DNA of 64,000 nucleotides from positions 489,344 through 553,343 of the forward strand of contig CBFFRP010000066.1 in the NCBI GenBank assembly GCA_965644295.1. The letters are read 5' to 3'. How positions within the stretch are numbered: position 1 is the stretch's first letter; every line of letters starts with the position of its first letter. The notes under the pieces were generated by a model, which ran no database searches, was not told the origin of the DNA, and saw only the letters and a list, made by a program, of their open reading frames with translations. The stretch comes from Paraphysomonas bandaiensis. Lineage: Eukaryota; Protista; Chrysophyceae. Shown here piece by piece: positions 8,532 to 15,525 of the stretch. Made by a program: the position numbers and the translations under genes.

Positions 8532-9025
8532 AGGGAGAGGGGGTGGCGGGGTTGATAGGGTGTTTATTATGGATATGTGTGGTGTCTCTCTCTATATACA
8601 CGCTCTCTCTATACATACATAGACATGCACATATTCATCCATCTGCTGCTGTGTATACGTACATGGTAGATGCTGTGTACATGAATGCATACACTGCTGC
8701 TCGTGCTGTATGTGATTGTGGTCGATGTATATGTACATGTCTAGATGTGTACTGCTGCTGTACACAGCAATGTACAGTATCCCATAGATGGAATAGATAT
8801 TACCAATGTACTGCTGTAGTGCTGTCAAGAATTTCGAGTACAGCAGTACTCTGTCTATCAGTACACCGCACTCTCCCTCCACTGTACACATACGTATCTC
8901 TGCAGGTATACGCAGTCTCCATGTACTGGACATGTACGTATATCTCTATATACAAGCGTCCATATCTATTTCTATATCTAGAGATCCTCTATGCCCCACC
9001 CCACCTCTTCCCCTCAACAAACACC

Positions 9026-12000
9026 ATGACCCTCCCTCTCCTCCTCTTCCTCTCCCTCCCCCTCCTCTCCTTATGCCTCCCTTATCCTCAGAGGAGCGGG
9101 TGTACAGGCGTCATGGGCGACTCCCTCTCATTGTCGTCTATAATCATTGGAGCTCCCGCATCATTCAGCCCACAAGATACATATTTCGATACAGGGACTC
9201 ACATGGTCAATAGCTGGATACTGTTCGCTCAGTGGATTAACTTACAGCGAGGAGGAATTCATATCAATGGTGAGAATGTCTCTGTCACAGTGACGTACAT
9301 AGAAGACTACTCGGACTCCGCTTATGTCTCATCTGCCACTGATTATCTCCTATCTAAAGGAGTTGATTTCATGTTTGCTCCTTACTCCTCATCTCTTACG
9401 ACTACATGCAGTGATATCACTGAGAGGAATGCAACTCTTTTAATGGCCGGGGCCGCTTCGTCGGTATCTCTTGACGTTAATTTGACATTACTAACTCTTC
9501 CGGACGATATAAGTTCATTGAGGTCATGCTTCAGGGCTTTCGTCGATATGGATGCTAGTAATGTAGTCGTTATCAAAGATAATAATGTAGCACGCTGCCA
9601 ATATTCCGATGTGGTATTCGCTGCCCAACATGAGAAAATAGAGCTAGCCGGATTCTATGAACTAGATCCACTTGACGCCAACTACCACGAAAATCTAACG
9701 ACTATAATAGCGACATTGAAAAGCAGAGGCGTGGAAACTTTGCTAGGATGCAGCTTTGATTCACTTTGTTTACAGGTTAGTTGCTTGCGTCTCGCAAGTG
9801 TCATGTGTTTCAGTAAATTCCTACTTCGTAGATACCTCGTATCGCACAGTCTCTGGACTACAACCCTAGCGGCATGTCATTCTCAATATGTCTCTCTAAT
9901 TTGCGTGTAGTGGAGGAATTGGGACGCTTTGCCGAGTATTTGTACACCACCACTCCTTGGGCACCACTCGATAGCATTGTAGGGACCATCACAGGATGGT
10001 CTGCTTCAGAGTTTGATGATATCTATTATGCCAATTTCTTACAGCATCCTCCCTATCAAGCAGCTAGTGTCTTTGCTAGTGCACTTCTGTTATCAACTGC
10101 TATCGAGATGACTCAAACGCTTGATCCATACATCCTTTCAGACTTCATTAAAAAAGAAAAGTTTCAGACTTTCTATGCTAATATTTCATTTAATGATTCA
10201 TCACAGACATCTTTTGATTCGTTGATTCAGCAGGTAGGTGTGGCATTGTGTAAAAACATGGTGAGGGGCGATATTGACGGTTACGTAGATGCTGTATACG
10301 GGTCGGAATGGAGATTACAACCTCTATGTTGTTAAACCCGATGCATTTCAAGAACGGGCTCCTGTTTTCCCGATGCCTACATGGCGTGAGCGCGAATGCA
10401 ATGATAACACCGATTATTGTAGTGGTCATGGCATATGCACTGATCAAGGAAATTGTACTTGTGATGCCAACTACTATGGTGGAAACAACGCGGCATCGTG
10501 CGACACTTATTGCGATGGGGATATCACAGGGGGATATTGCAAGTCTAACAGGGTCCTCTACGTCGGCGGGATGATATCAAGCACGCTTGCTGAGTATGAC
10601 GAATATTCCTCAGCTCTTCGTTTGGCAATCGACCTTGTAAACAACAAATCAGACGGGTGGTTTGACGACACTCCGCAAATCACAATAAAAGTGCGACTAA
10701 ATGACACACAATGTGATGGCGACGTAGCTTATGCTATGGTACTTGACCAAGAGAATTGGGCCCGAGAAAACAACAACGGCAACGAACTGGATGGTGTGAT
10801 AGGTGCACTATGTTCAGATGCCAGGTTTACAGTAAATATATAATAAAATTATTTGATTTTCTGTTCTTCAGTGAAGCGATTGCTGGCTATGGAACAAGTG
10901 TGTCTCTACCACAGATCTCATTCGCCTCTACTGCTGATGACCTCAGTGACACAGACACGTACTCTTATTTTTCACGTACATGCCCGTCGGACTACTCCCA
11001 AGGAACTATGTTGGCAAACACACTGAATTACTTTGGCATTAAACCATATGTGACAGGTATGCTAATGCTTCGTTTTATATTTGTGTGATCTTCTTCATGT
11101 TATCTGTAGTTGTCTACATGAATGGTTTCAGCCCTACAGGCTTGACGAATGACTTCATTGCTGCGTAAGCTATGTCTGTATTACAATTAATCTTTGGGTA
11201 AGAGTTTAATTTTAGGTGGGAAGGCAGCGGCAACATAGTATTGAAGTCTGTGCTGCTTGAGAATGAAGATGAAGACTCGTCATATGATGACGTAATTGAT
11301 GCTATTGCTGCCACAGGCGCCCCCGCCGTTGTTCTTGTTCTTTATCAAGAAGAAGTGGGAAAAATATTACGCGCTGCTCAGAAGAATGACAGGACGTCAA
11401 GTACAGACATAGTGTGGTTAGGAGTTGAGTACTGGACAGATACTCAGATTGACGACCCCGATTCTCTTGTAAATGGTATATTGGGTCTCTCGCCCTATGA
11501 GTCAAATTCAACTTTAACCCGAAATTTTTATGACTTGTGGGCGTCATTAGATTCAAGTCAATATATTGATTCTGATGGTGACCGTACCACACTTTCTCCG
11601 TACACTACTTTTGTAGTGGACGCTGTGTTTACATTAGCGTTAGCTTATCAACAGGCCATTGACGACAACACTGGGCTAGATGGTTCACTGTTTCGCCAGT
11701 ACGTTTTCCAGGTGATTGCAGGATCAATACAGTTTGATGGTGTATCCGGATTTAAAGATTTTAATACGTACGGGGACCAAGTAAGTCCGTTGTATACAAT
11801 AAAAAACTACCAAATATCAGATGACGGTAGTACCGGTTGGGTTAACGTGGGTTCTGTTAACATTTCCACTACGCTTGATGTTGACCTTAGCACAGTACTA
11901 TGGCCAGGTAATGAGTCCGATATGTCTAATTAGCTTTTAAAATCGTAGTTCAGATGGATCTGTTGGCATAACATCATCATATAGCTCTCAGCTTTCTTTG

Positions 12001-13875
12001 TATTGTCCTGAAGGGATGGAACCAGTCCAAATATCCTTGGGGTTCCGTGTGTGCACGCAATGTGCTGTTGGTTATTACAGTCCCAACGTTGGCCCAGGTG
12101 CTTGTAAGAAATGCCCTGTCGGGGCAGACTGCAACGATGTTGGAGTAGTCGTTCCCTGTGTACTTCCAGGATACTGGCGCCCCGTTCCCCCACAGGATGC
12201 TATAGGCGACTTTGAGAAATATAAGATATACAGCTGTGATGATTTTGAGAGCTGCTTGGGGGGATGTGTCTTGAATACAACCTGCAGAGATAATCGTGAC
12301 CAAATCGCACCTGTATGCGCTGTGTGTACGGACGGATACTACCTGCTCGGTGGACAATGTCTAGAGTGTTCACAGTCCTCGGAGAAGATTGGTTTTATGA
12401 AATTTCTCGTTGAAGCGTTCTTTGTATACTTTGTTCTGGTTGTTGTTGTTTGGATGCATATTAGTTATAAAGGCCATGAGAGATATTCTGTGTCTAGTAT
12501 TGTTCCTCGCAATACATCTGAAGCTTTTGAGAAGTTGCTCCCTCGTACTGCTGTCACATTCAAACTAGTTATTTCATTTTGGCAGGTTATGACAGCGGCT
12601 TATTATAATCTTTCTGTTGAGTGGCCACAGTCAATTACCCATTTCTTCGGTGTATTGCGATTCAATCCGTTTGATCACCTTTATTCATCTGCTGCATGTG
12701 CTGACGTCTCATTTTTGTCCGCTTATTCAGTGCTGATTCTTTTCTTTGTACTGCCGTTTGCGTTTCTACTCACTTTAGTGATGTCGTTCGCCACAGTGTT
12801 CTACTTCGGCGTACATAAGTATGAAGGTAAAAGCGATCAGTGGGTAAGACAGTCTCTCAAAAGTATGTGGGACTGCTGTGCAAGAATTTTTATATGGTTC
12901 TGTCTTTTGATATTTACTCAGGGATCATCAGTGTAAGTGTCATATAGATTCCTATATTGGTATCTTCATATATATGCATTCAGGATGATTTCGTTTTTCA
13001 ATTGTCGTGACTTTGGAGTGGTGGGGGTATATCTTAAAGGAGATTACACAGTAGATTGCTCCAGTGACACTTACAAATCATATGCTGTGTTAGCTGCGTT
13101 GGGAATTTTACTTTATCCTGTAGGAATTGCGTTTTTATTTTTTGCGGTTATTCGCTACCGCGACCATCCTCTTTTTGAGAGATGTTCTATGCTTCTGTAT
13201 AGGAACTTCGAACCTCAGTGGAGATACTTCGAACTCTATGAACTTTTCAGGAAAATGCTTTTGACATCTTTGTTTCTATATGTTTCTGACCCGGAGTCTC
13301 CGTCACGAGCCCTTTATCTACTCATTGTTGATATTATAGGGCTGATTGTTCTATCATTTTGTCGGCCCTATATGTTTCGAAGTGATGATATCTTGAGCAG
13401 CGCGTTTGTAATGGTGGAATGTTTTACATTCCTTGTTGCACTATTGGTGTTGTCAGGTGTGTCGGATACCGACAATTATCATCAGCATGTTCTATATAAT
13501 ACGCTTTTTGCATGCTTGATCCTTGTCATAGCTATTATTGTTCCATGTACTTTCGTGGTTAAAATTGATTACGTGAATAGTAAGTTATATGAGTACAGCG
13601 GTGTCGCTGCAAATAAGCTTCCTGATACTGGCCGTACCGCCAAAAATATAAAATCTCTTACGCGTGATAGACTTCAAAATATTCTACAGTTTGTTCGTCG
13701 CCGCAGTTCAGGCCTCTCCAGTATGGAGAGTAGTGTTGTTGGGAGATGCAGTGCCACTACTGAGATGACTGAGATTACTCATGTTCATCCGTCTGACGAA
13801 TTAAAGCAACGAAAGAGAGCTGCAACTATAATGGGTAGTGAGAAGAATCCAATCAAACATGATATTGATGTATAG
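9026..13875 (+). CDS. Large membrane receptor/channel-like protein: signal peptide, Venus-flytrap domain, EGF-like module, second Venus-flytrap domain, Cys-rich repeats, multi-TM C-terminus (multi-exon)
   Basis: Signal peptide MTLPLLLFLSLPLLSLC. PBP type-1 motifs (WINLQRGGI; FMFAPYSSSLT). EGF-like CSGHGICTDQGNCTCDANYYG. ANF-receptor-like PQISFASTADDLSD..YSYFSRTCPSD..QG. CxxC repeats. TM region with FWQV, YLKGDYTVDC and YFELYELFRKMLL. ORF pieces are joined by ~50-bp introns (e.g. 12933-12983). Confidence 0.8.
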
Positions 13876-14068
13876 TTGTGTGATATCCTGGTGTCAATTT
13901 GTGTGGTGTCAAGAGAACAGCATAAAATGCTAATTTTGATGTTGTTTCGTCGTCAGTGGTTAATCGTATTGTTATTTTGATTTTTCCACACTGAAGTGAG
14001 ATTGTGTTCATTGCCTGACTACACGGCTACCTGCAAATTTATCAATGTCTTCCAAGCCCAACTTATCT

Positions 14069-14170
14069 AGTGAATGTCTTGTTAGCAACAGTCGTGAAAG
14101 AGTCAAAACTAATGTAGCATTGAAATTTAACTAACTTGTGCTTAACTCTTATATCCTACTATTTAGCGCT
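14069..14170 (-). mobile_element. 3' fragment of the dispersed SINE-like retroposon family
   Basis: Matches the tail of the copies at 43178-43260 and 43560-43675. Confidence 0.7.
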
Positions 14171-14173
14171 TTT

Positions 14174-14847
14174 TGTTGAGTTTTGCTGTTTAAGCAATTA
14201 AAAGCTGTAATTCTATGATATTGGAATTATGACGGTTACTGGAGAATACAGTAGTGGTTAGCTGTATTATGAGAAGTAATGAGAACTGAATATATATTGA
14301 CCATACAATAAGATAGTGACGATATAAGATCGTACTAGAAATGAGTGGTAGTAGAGATAACGTGATATATTGTTTATTATATTTATTATAATCTTCTCTT
14401 ATATTAACTTGATTCATGAGTGAATACACGTCCAGTTAACTTACTAATCATCCAATTGTGTCATATCTTGACATGGTAGCGGATGGTAGTTACGATCTAC
14501 CGACCTAGGTTATGGGCCCAACACGCTTCCTCTGCGTCATAACCTAGGTCGGTAGATCGTAACTACCATCCGCTACCATGTCAAGATATGACACAATTGG
14601 ATGATTAGTAAGTTAACTGGACGTGTATTTACTCGTTAATCAAGTTAAGATGAGGGAAGATTATAATAAATATAATAAGCGATATATCACGTTATCTCTA
14701 CTACCACTCATTTCTAGTACGATCTTACATCGTCATGATATCACTTCTCATAATACAGCTCATCACTACTGTATTCTTCGACTAACGGTCATAATTCCAA
14801 CACCTTAGAATTACAGCTTTTAATTGCTCAAACAGCAAAACTCAACA
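14174..14847. mobile_element. Inverted pair of Copia-type LTRs (14174-14473 and 14579-14847) joined by a fold-back tRNA-iMet copy; 5-bp TSD CTTTT
   Basis: Each arm is TGTTGAG...TTGACA. CTTTT at 14169-14173 and 14848-14852. Perfect 92-bp inverted stem 14423-14514/14538-14629. The same LTR occurs at 57067-57368 next to a polypurine tract. Confidence 0.85.
14474..14540 (-). pseudogene. Reverse-transcribed copy of mature initiator tRNA-Met (about nt 8-76 including CCA); extended primer-binding site
   Basis: Minus strand: TGACGCAGAGGAAGCGTGTTGGGCCCATAACCTAGGTCGGTAGATCGTAACTACCATCCGCTACCA. Shows the iMet D-loop GGAAGCGTG, GGG-CC-CAT-AA anticodon arm, ATCG T-loop and encoded CCA. The 5' acceptor strand is missing. 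Confidence 0.85.
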
Positions 14848-14965
14848 CTTTTGGGACAGCAATTAATAATTTAGTACATCCTGCGTCATTTAATCAACGC
14901 GCAATTGTTACGTAGCCCTGATTCTTGTGCAAAAACCAAAAACCAAAATGATTAAACTTATTATT

Positions 14966-15151
14966 CGGAAGTGGTTGCACCTTGGTGCTTGCGGCGACGC
15001 ACAAGCAGCTTCTGTAGCGTTAAATAGTAGGATAATAGAATTTGTGCTGATTAGTTATGGGTAGAGGTCTAACTAGTAGACTAGTATTCAACTAGCCGCT
15101 ATATCGGAACGAGTTTTTAACGCCTATTGCTAAATAAAAAGACATTCAATA
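14966..15151 (+). mobile_element. 5'-truncated non-LTR retroposon copy with 13-bp TSD
   Basis: TAAACTTATTATT at 14953-14965 and 15152-15164. Near-identical to 36272-36459. Ends in AATAAAAAGACATTCAATA. Confidence 0.85.
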
Positions 15152-15525
15152 TAAACTTATTATTAAACTGTATGTGTACCACACAGTGTTACTAGAGCAC
15201 TGTGGCATATAGAAAAATAGTTAAGTCGTACACATGATCATGGAATACAATTAAAATTTTGCTTCTGAATATATAGTTCAGACCGAACGTTTAGATTTAT
15301 GATGCTGCTTTCTATATTTTATATTTTAAATCCTTTAAATACTGCCTAGACACCTTATAGGACAAATGAGGTATACATTGACTCTCTCCATAGTTGCACC
15401 AGTTATTTATTAGGGCCTCAACATCAACCTAGTGAATACTACAGCAGTGCAAACTACAGCTGCATACTAAATATATATCCACAGCATAGCCAACTTATTA
15501 TTACCAACACGTATATATACACCAC

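Follow-up and report, generated by a model that had tools for sequence, protein, structure and literature searches.

An inverted pair of LTRs joined through a copy of initiator tRNA-Met in Paraphysomonas bandaiensis: a probable integrated by-product of faulty reverse transcription

How do two LTRs come to face each other in a chromosome with a folded-back copy of a tRNA as the only sequence between them? Such an arrangement is present in the window, that is, the whole stretch of 64,000 nucleotides of Paraphysomonas bandaiensis DNA that was analysed. It consists of a 674-base insertion (window positions 14174-14847) with CTTTT on either side, which was delimited by sequence reading, a repeat search and a pattern search. 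A sequence-only reading had described the locus as a 300-bp LTR followed by antisense tRNA-iMet, sense tRNA nt 34-76 and an inverted LTR of 269 bp, all flanked by CTTTT. Every one of these parts was found in its place:

14169-14173, no strand: left copy of the target-site duplication CTTTT, read directly; 5-bp duplications are also present at the solo LTRs L006, L007 and L009
14174-14473, plus strand: left LTR, 300 bp, TGTTGAG...TTGACA; by copy comparison, positions 1-222 are A-type and positions 223-300 B-type
14474-14536, plus strand: antisense tRNA-iMet, 63 nt, from the CCA back to nt 11, aligned to the tRNA-iMet genes of the genome
14474-14491, plus strand: the normal 18-nt PBS of the family, complement of tRNA-iMet nt 59-76 including the CCA; the same 18 nt follow normal 5' LTRs
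14492-14536, plus strand: read-through part, antisense tRNA-iMet nt 58 to nt 11, with A at position 58 (sense T) and CCTAGG in place of the CCCAAAGG of the genes; by alignment, a variant unique in the genome
14523-14537, no strand: true centre, the D-arm complement, folding into a 4-bp stem ACGC/GCGT with the 7-nt loop TTCCTCT
14537, no strand: single T, the base expected opposite A25' after self-priming
14538-14578, plus strand: sense tRNA-iMet nt 34-76 with CCA, 41 nt; exact reverse complement of 14474-14514 by repeat search, pattern search and alignment
14579-14847, minus strand: right LTR, inverted, 269 bp, of the B' lineage (without the 32-bp segment) and with a foreign patch at LTR positions 224-249, by copy comparison
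14848-14852, no strand: right copy of the target-site duplication CTTTT, read directly

Two details of the turn-around had to be corrected. The antisense tRNA had been thought to reach about nt 8, but the alignment puts its stop at nt 11, and a CAT/ATG microhomology proposed for the turn was rejected, as the join reads ...GCG-T-CATAAC.

The outer ends of the palindrome coincide exactly with the U3 terminus of the LTR, and the length of the duplication agrees with that found at the solo LTRs of the family. According to a hand calculation, a 5/5 match of the flanks would arise by chance with a probability of about 0.0014 at the local base composition. The repeat search resolved the inverted repeat into an inner block of 198 nt (95% complementary) and outer blocks of 70 and 38 nt (90-92%), and an RNA copy of the palindrome folds into one hairpin of -478 kcal/mol, compared with -144 kcal/mol for shuffled sequences. 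The locus shares with a canonical LTR retrotransposon the 18-nt tRNA-iMet PBS, which stands in register after the LTR end in both arms, and a target-site duplication of the length usual in its family. It departs from that plan in the orientation of the LTRs, which are inverted instead of direct, and in the internal region and PPT: solely tRNA-derived sequence lies between the arms, whereas normal copies carry the tract GAGAGGGAG.

Chimeric fold-back reads classically produce palindromes, and for this reason an artefact of the assembly or of long-read sequencing has to be considered. Moreover, neither the centre junction nor the CCA-plus-T-arm read-through pattern was matched in metagenome contigs, a collection from which records of this genome were possibly excluded. 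However, fold-back artefacts lead to identical arms of arbitrary DNA beside a break, while the arms of the palindrome differ by a lineage-specific indel of 32 bp and about 20 substitutions, its centre is asymmetric, its ends are LTR termini and a 5-bp duplication surrounds the whole. An artefact is thus very improbable.

The LTR family from which the arms derive is abundant in the 62.5-Mb assembly that was searched, with about 700 first-look candidate copies. In six copies (L005, L016, L017, L022, L026 and L029), the 18 nt TGGTAGCGGATGGTAGTT directly follow the LTR and are themselves followed by a leader unrelated to the tRNA. The tract GAGAGGGAG, which is the PPT of the family, precedes many LTR copies. 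Solo LTRs are flanked by the 5-bp duplications TGTTC, GCTAA and AGCAG, and paired LTRs lie 1.5-2.2 kb apart. No ORF of at least 110 aa was detected inside the copies examined, and therefore the family, as seen here, is non-autonomous. Downstream of the 5' LTR-PBS copies, host genes (gelsolin, WD40) and no gag-pol were found, and none of 40 PBS-leader sites is located close to the 150 best RVT_2 matches in the genome. Two features, its 5-bp duplication and its tRNA-iMet PBS, make the family a candidate member of Copia. A 7.6-kb copy on the minus strand of another contig (C435:164342-171967, within C435:164182-172082), which carries this LTR at both ends and is apparently nested in a solo LTR of the family, may be the coding partner.

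The window contains a second stretch of the family at some distance from the palindrome:

57065-57370, minus strand: diverged LTR of the family, recognised by similarity, with the PPT GAGAGGGAG at 57371-57379
to about 57470, minus strand: PPT-plus-U3-start module beyond the PPT of the diverged LTR, recognised by sequence comparison

The same LTR as in the palindrome had been suspected behind a Copia-like PPT at 57067-57380. A family member does stand there behind the family PPT, but it is a diverged variant. The internal 3' end of the family also shows one to three tandem modules, each of which consists of a PPT, the first 42 nt of U3 and a spacer of about 60-120 nt (window 57380-57470, and upstream of 3' LTRs in L004, L010, L025, L027, L028 and L030). 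These modules look like products of repeated mis-initiation or slippage at the PPT.

The tRNA-derived centre provides the key to the origin of the palindrome. ARAGORN called no tRNA in the window and Rfam calls none at the palindrome; the identity of the centre was therefore established by direct alignment to the tRNA-iMet genes of the same genome. These genes (L034, L035 and L037) were located by similarity and confirmed with ARAGORN, and they show the initiator hallmarks in their sequence, namely a pairing of A1 with T72, an anticodon stem with three G:C pairs and the T-loop ATCGAAA. Rfam returned sub-threshold matches of 46-52 bits to the microRNA precursors mir-3718 and MIR1033 at window positions 14448-14604, which are not evidence because any long hairpin yields such matches. 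An automatic annotation could mislabel the long hairpin at these positions as a microRNA precursor.

Since the PBS of the family is the complement of tRNA nt 59-76 including the CCA, strong-stop DNA of the plus strand normally stops one base short of A58. The expectation that such DNA copies at most 18 nt of the primer thus holds for this family. In the palindrome, the tRNA copy extends 45 nt beyond the end of the 18-nt PBS, through position 58 to nt 11. The additional 45 nt do not originate from the RNA of the element, because its normal PBS stops before A58 and is followed by the unrelated leader. A tRNA gene does not account for them either: the palindrome lacks nt 1-10, carries the CCA, which the tRNA-iMet genes do not encode, and has T at position 58 in both arms of the alignment, whereas L034 and L035 lack the CCA and have A58. 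The CCA and T58 indicate a copy of a mature, modified tRNA, and the stop of the copy before G10 agrees with such a processed template, whose modifications are presumed. Judged by its sequence, the tRNA part of the palindrome is therefore a copy of the mature tRNA, and derives neither from element RNA nor from a gene.

Blocking methylations are present on G10 and G9 in many eukaryotic tRNAs. By analogy, we assume that A58, G9 and G10 are modified in the tRNA of P. bandaiensis. The modified base m1A58 is the strong-stop signal and is needed for the stop in retroviruses; in its absence, reverse transcriptase copies further into the tRNA and the product is reported to fail (PMC8599865). Furthermore, reverse transcriptases that pass m1A misincorporate at that site (PMC4787781).

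The shape of the centre suggests how the copy turned around. When the antisense tRNA tail is folded as DNA, its 3' GCG pairs with CGC of the D-arm complement in both the minimum free energy and the centroid fold, and the T at 14537 is the next base that would be templated after this pairing. On the right side, 8 nt (tRNA nt 26-33) are missing, which appear as an 8-nt bulge on the left side of the fold. Self-priming at the D-arm, combined with a skip of 8 nt or their later deletion, would describe the centre exactly, while a snap-back alone would leave the 8-nt gap unexplained in the folding model. Moreover, the tRNA sequence (41 nt) and the final 51 nt of the LTR do not differ between the arms. 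Both arms contain CCTAGG where all tRNA-iMet genes and the other retro-copies have CCCAAAGG, and this CCTAGG occurs nowhere else in the genome. Because the variant is private to both arms, the centre of one arm was copied from that of the other, and the arm centres have one origin.

The sequence-only reading had left it open whether the palindrome is a one-off fossil or belongs to a class of inverted-LTR elements, and had suggested counting the copies of the junction. This count was carried out on the genome, and the centre junction was found at one place in 62.5 Mb; likewise, neither the 108-nt centre nor the CCTAGG variant nor the CCA-plus-T-arm pattern occurs elsewhere, except in the tRNA genes and three retro-copies. 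Since the junction is single-copy, the palindrome is a one-off and the idea of a class, for which several copies at independent sites would be expected, was abandoned. Some retroelements have inverted terminal repeats, as in DIRS, and others target tRNA genes, which would make a mobile class of inverted-LTR elements or two LTR elements that had inserted on both sides of a tRNA gene conceivable in principle. However, apart from the single-copy junction, part of the tRNA is present twice, as an inverted duplication, its nt 1-10 are missing, the tRNA sequence meets both LTR ends in the PBS register and, unlike the tRNA genes, it carries the CCA. Both versions are therefore extremely improbable.

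Whether a single molecule folded back on itself can be judged from the arms, for which the LTR copies were compared directly with one another. The left and right arms are only 82% identical overall. The 32-bp segment that distinguishes them is absent from the right arm and from the 268-bp 'B' copies (L025, L026 and L028-L030), and present in the left arm and in the 'A' copies. Indeed, each arm is nearer to LTRs elsewhere than to the opposite arm: L002 and the left arm show 3 differences in the first (outer) 222 positions, and the copy on C655 (C655:14529-14797) matches the right arm at 98% identity over 269 nt and at 94% over the last 90 nt. Thus, the single LTR that had been assumed for both arms is a single family represented by two variants.

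Both arms are also mosaic. The last 78 nt of the left arm are B-type, with a CT-AATC end motif that is found in none of 20 other A copies and in all six B copies. The differences between the right arm and C655 are almost confined to the last 90 nt and cluster at LTR positions 224-249, a patch in which the two best of the few diagnostic sites look A-like, so that its lineage can be given as A-like at most. The B-type U5 of the right arm is identical to that of the left arm. Written as U3, patch and end, the left arm reads A, B, B and the right arm B', A-like, B. Since the arms come from two different LTR lineages and their mosaic patches are reciprocal, a simple snap-back is insufficient, and the comparison indicates that at least two templates took part or that the arms recombined afterwards.

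One way to bring two templates together is a 3'-to-3' joining of two independent read-through strong-stop DNAs, which end at nt 11 and nt 34, and integration of the resulting dimer. Reverse transcriptase could have achieved the joining by jumping from the end of one template to that of the next, with one T:A pair added without a template, or the host could have joined the ends, and the stop at nt 34 could stem from a primer tRNA that had been cut in the anticodon loop. The two lineages of the arms and the absence of microhomology at the join are in line with this scenario, and end-to-end template jumping is a known activity of reverse transcriptases. However, both arms carry the private CCTAGG, which is absent from every tRNA gene and the other retro-copies, and they share an identical B-type U5 end even though the left arm is otherwise A-type; independent molecules are not expected to have both features in common. 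In addition, the T at the join is exactly the base that D-arm self-priming predicts. We consider the joining of two DNAs unlikely.

Alternatively, the palindrome could have started as a perfect, one-lineage product of pure snap-back, and the arms could have diverged later by ectopic gene conversion and exchange between the arms; an exchange between inverted repeats turns the centre round. The same mosaic pattern could be the outcome if the arms recombined at a later time, with each other or with ectopic copies. The family offers hundreds of copies, many of them with mosaic LTRs, as partners for conversion, the patch at 224-249 looks as if it had been swapped reciprocally between the arms, and long palindromes are known to be unstable (PMC7999016). 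On the other hand, this history requires at least two separate events and a conversion tract that spans nearly the whole outer arm but spares the ends, the duplication and the centre, whereas an intermolecular strand transfer combines the U3 of one lineage with the R-U5 of another in one step. Divergence by later conversion appears a little less likely still than the joining of two DNAs.

Taken together, we think it quite probable that the palindrome arose when the reverse transcription of a small non-autonomous LTR retrotransposon, with initiator tRNA-Met as its primer, went wrong and the by-product was integrated. The core of the earlier proposal, namely read-through into the tRNA, a snap-back or template switch, a palindrome with two U3 ends and its integration as a unit, is retained in this explanation; the pure snap-back is not, since the arms represent two lineages. 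The sequence itself shows the read-through, the origin from a mature tRNA, the common centre, the two lineages and the duplication; the order of events, the position of R (at about LTR positions 223-249 in this model), the shared particle and the part of integrase that follow are a reconstruction. One particle would package one A-type and one B'-type RNA, a detail to which we assign slightly less than even weight. Both minus-strand strong-stop DNAs would then jump to the opposite RNA, which would give rise to a first LTR with the structure U3(A)-R(B')-U5(B') and a second LTR with the structure U3(B')-R(A)-U5(A). Plus-strand strong-stop DNA from the first LTR would read past tRNA position 58, leaving a T there, and come to a halt at nt 11, beside G10 and G9. 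Its 3' end would fold on the D-arm complement (GCG on CGC), prime its own extension and add the T; the 8 nt corresponding to tRNA nt 26-33 would be skipped during copying or lost later. The self-primed strand would copy tRNA nt 34-76 and about 50 nt of the B'-type U5 and, between LTR positions 249 and 270, switch by homology to the strong-stop DNA of the second LTR, which it would follow to the U3 end of that strand. Both ends of the product would be U3 termini (...CAACA-3'), which are close to the normal U5 end (...TGACA-3'), and integrase would join the two identical ...CAACA-3' ends to the target with the 5-bp stagger of the family. It is the duplication that suggests this use of two U3 ends by integrase. 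The palindrome as such is unable to transpose further.

Read-through of this kind has happened more than once in the genome. A second fossil is located on the minus strand of another contig (L033:1463-2190, about 120.35-121.08 kb of contig C182). It comprises an LTR of a different Copia family, interrupted by a 380-bp insertion, which is followed by antisense tRNA-iMet nt 76-10 with A58 changed to C and then by a second copy of the 37-38 nt at the end of the LTR (U5). The fossil is flanked by ATAAG and ATAAA, and its LTR belongs to a Copia element with an open frame of 1681 aa. A normal copy of this Copia, with its 5' LTR at L033:2572-3065, lies 1 kb from the fossil and has a PBS of 8 nt of tRNA-iMet (TGGTAGCG), followed by AG and the gag start codon. 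The read-through tail of the fossil appears to have returned to U5 by a jump at a CA dinucleotide and thereby to have regained the proper U5 end. This event is independent, it took place in a different family and its resolution was of another kind, which shows that read-through to nt 10-11 is recurrent in P. bandaiensis. Outside the palindrome, two CCA-bearing, 5'-truncated copies of tRNA-iMet were found, and neither has A at position 58: the copy in L033 has C and the copy in L039 (L039:1500-1560) has T. A further CCA-bearing copy (L036:1501-1575) is full-length, carries T at position 59 and adjoins a fold-back of about 230 bp and, on the opposite strand, a truncated Copia gag.

The insertion site itself has a history. 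The left flank (window 14068-14170) belongs to an old dispersed repeat, of which it represents the first 103 nt, and ends within 3 nt of the insertion, and a comparison with relatives of this repeat did not reveal its usual continuation to the right of the palindrome. Since the repeat is cut at the insertion and its remainder is not on the other side, either the site had undergone rearrangement beforehand or something other than a clean insertion by integrase took place. At a second locus (L022:900-1035), a related repeat breaks off at this base too and borders on the first 27 nt of this LTR; at the two unrelated loci the repeat ends in ...TTTAGCGC or ...TTTAACGC, 0 or 4 nt from the 5' end of the LTR. 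There is a small chance that this shared end-point reflects a rearranged or favoured insertion site.

A relative of the left-flank repeat, a very young dispersed repeat of 188 bp, is located on the minus strand at window positions 14966-15153. It is represented by about 2000 first-look candidates, many of which are 98-100% identical. The copy in the window is flanked by a 13-bp duplication (AATAATAAGTTTA), the duplications of other short copies measure 12-13 bp and longer copies extend past 188 bp. Because of the long duplications, this repeat does not fit an LTR element. The neighbouring ORFs encode ANF-receptor, EGF, ephrin-receptor-like, TRP and WD40 domains. Among them, the ORF pieces with ANF-receptor, EGF, ephrin-receptor-like and TRP-channel domains on the plus strand (window 8543-13875), which end about 300 bp before the palindrome, probably form one multi-exon receptor or channel gene.

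A single natural sequence thus records steps that are usually confined to laboratory observation, namely the priming tRNA, its maturity and modification, the misread site at position 58 and the final stop at nt 10-11. It probably also records that two different RNAs were together in one particle, and it suggests that integrase is able to use two U3 ends. Furthermore, the palindrome could serve as a ready marker for the modification of A58 to m1A58 and of G9 and G10 in an organism with unstudied tRNA chemistry. The products of a failed stop in the tRNA have been regarded as dead ends in vitro and in cell culture, and the palindrome and the fossil on contig C182 indicate that they reach the germline of a free-living eukaryote. 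The palindrome is a single event and not a system, and its value lies in the evidence of mechanism and not in new biology.

The inverted arrangement invites comparison with Mu killer of maize, which is a DNA rearrangement of a DNA transposon and has been demonstrated to cause silencing. Like Mu killer, the palindrome duplicates part of a transposon family in inverted orientation and is a candidate source of a long hairpin directed against that family. It differs from Mu killer in its origin, which lies in reverse transcription instead of DNA rearrangement, and in the role of the hairpin, which is hypothetical here and demonstrated there. If either LTR promoter fired, inward transcription would produce a hairpin RNA of about 330 bp. 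That such a transcript is made, enters a small-RNA pathway and silences the whole LTR family, with its roughly 700 candidate copies, is a long shot. If it were true, a replication accident would have turned into a 'killer' locus that is inherited, comparable to Mu killer and its target MuDR in maize, and the hairpin could also silence any element with a tRNA-iMet PBS.

Inverted long terminal repeats are also a feature of DIRS elements, which encode a tyrosine recombinase, leave the target unduplicated and occur in many copies. The palindrome shares the inverted repeats and none of these three other properties. The parent family resembles TRIM and LARD elements in that it has LTRs, PBS, PPT and 5-bp duplications and no coding capacity, and Helenus elements likewise contain a tRNA-like sequence (PMC10886601). 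The tRNA-like part of Helenus is located inside direct LTRs and is probably derived from a SINE (PMC10886601), whereas the palindrome carries a copy of the primer between inverted LTRs. For copy-back retroviral DNA and for strong-stop transfer in Ty1, earlier reports exist on which we do not rely. In a literature search, no integrated dimer of inverted LTRs with a copy of the primer tRNA at its centre came to light; as this search covered the older retrovirus literature thinly, our claim is limited to a new variant of a known accident and does not extend to a new kind of element.

The closest counterparts come from retroviruses. Strong-stop DNA of HIV-1 (tRNA-Lys3) and MLV (tRNA-Pro) contains, as in the family described here, a primer copy of 18 nt that stops one base short of position 58. 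The junctions of retroviral 2-LTR circles resemble the palindrome in that aberrant ends may keep primer-derived sequence beside U5 (PMC5618025). These circles have direct LTRs and short insertions, whereas the palindrome is a linear inverted dimer with 63 and 41 nt of tRNA that was integrated with a target duplication. When retroviral reverse transcription continues into the tRNA, the read-through tail is unable to pair after strand transfer (PMC8599865). Retroviral read-through has been observed in vitro and in infected cells, and its products have been described as unable to integrate; here, a copy-back product of the same failure is found integrated in the germline genome of a protist.
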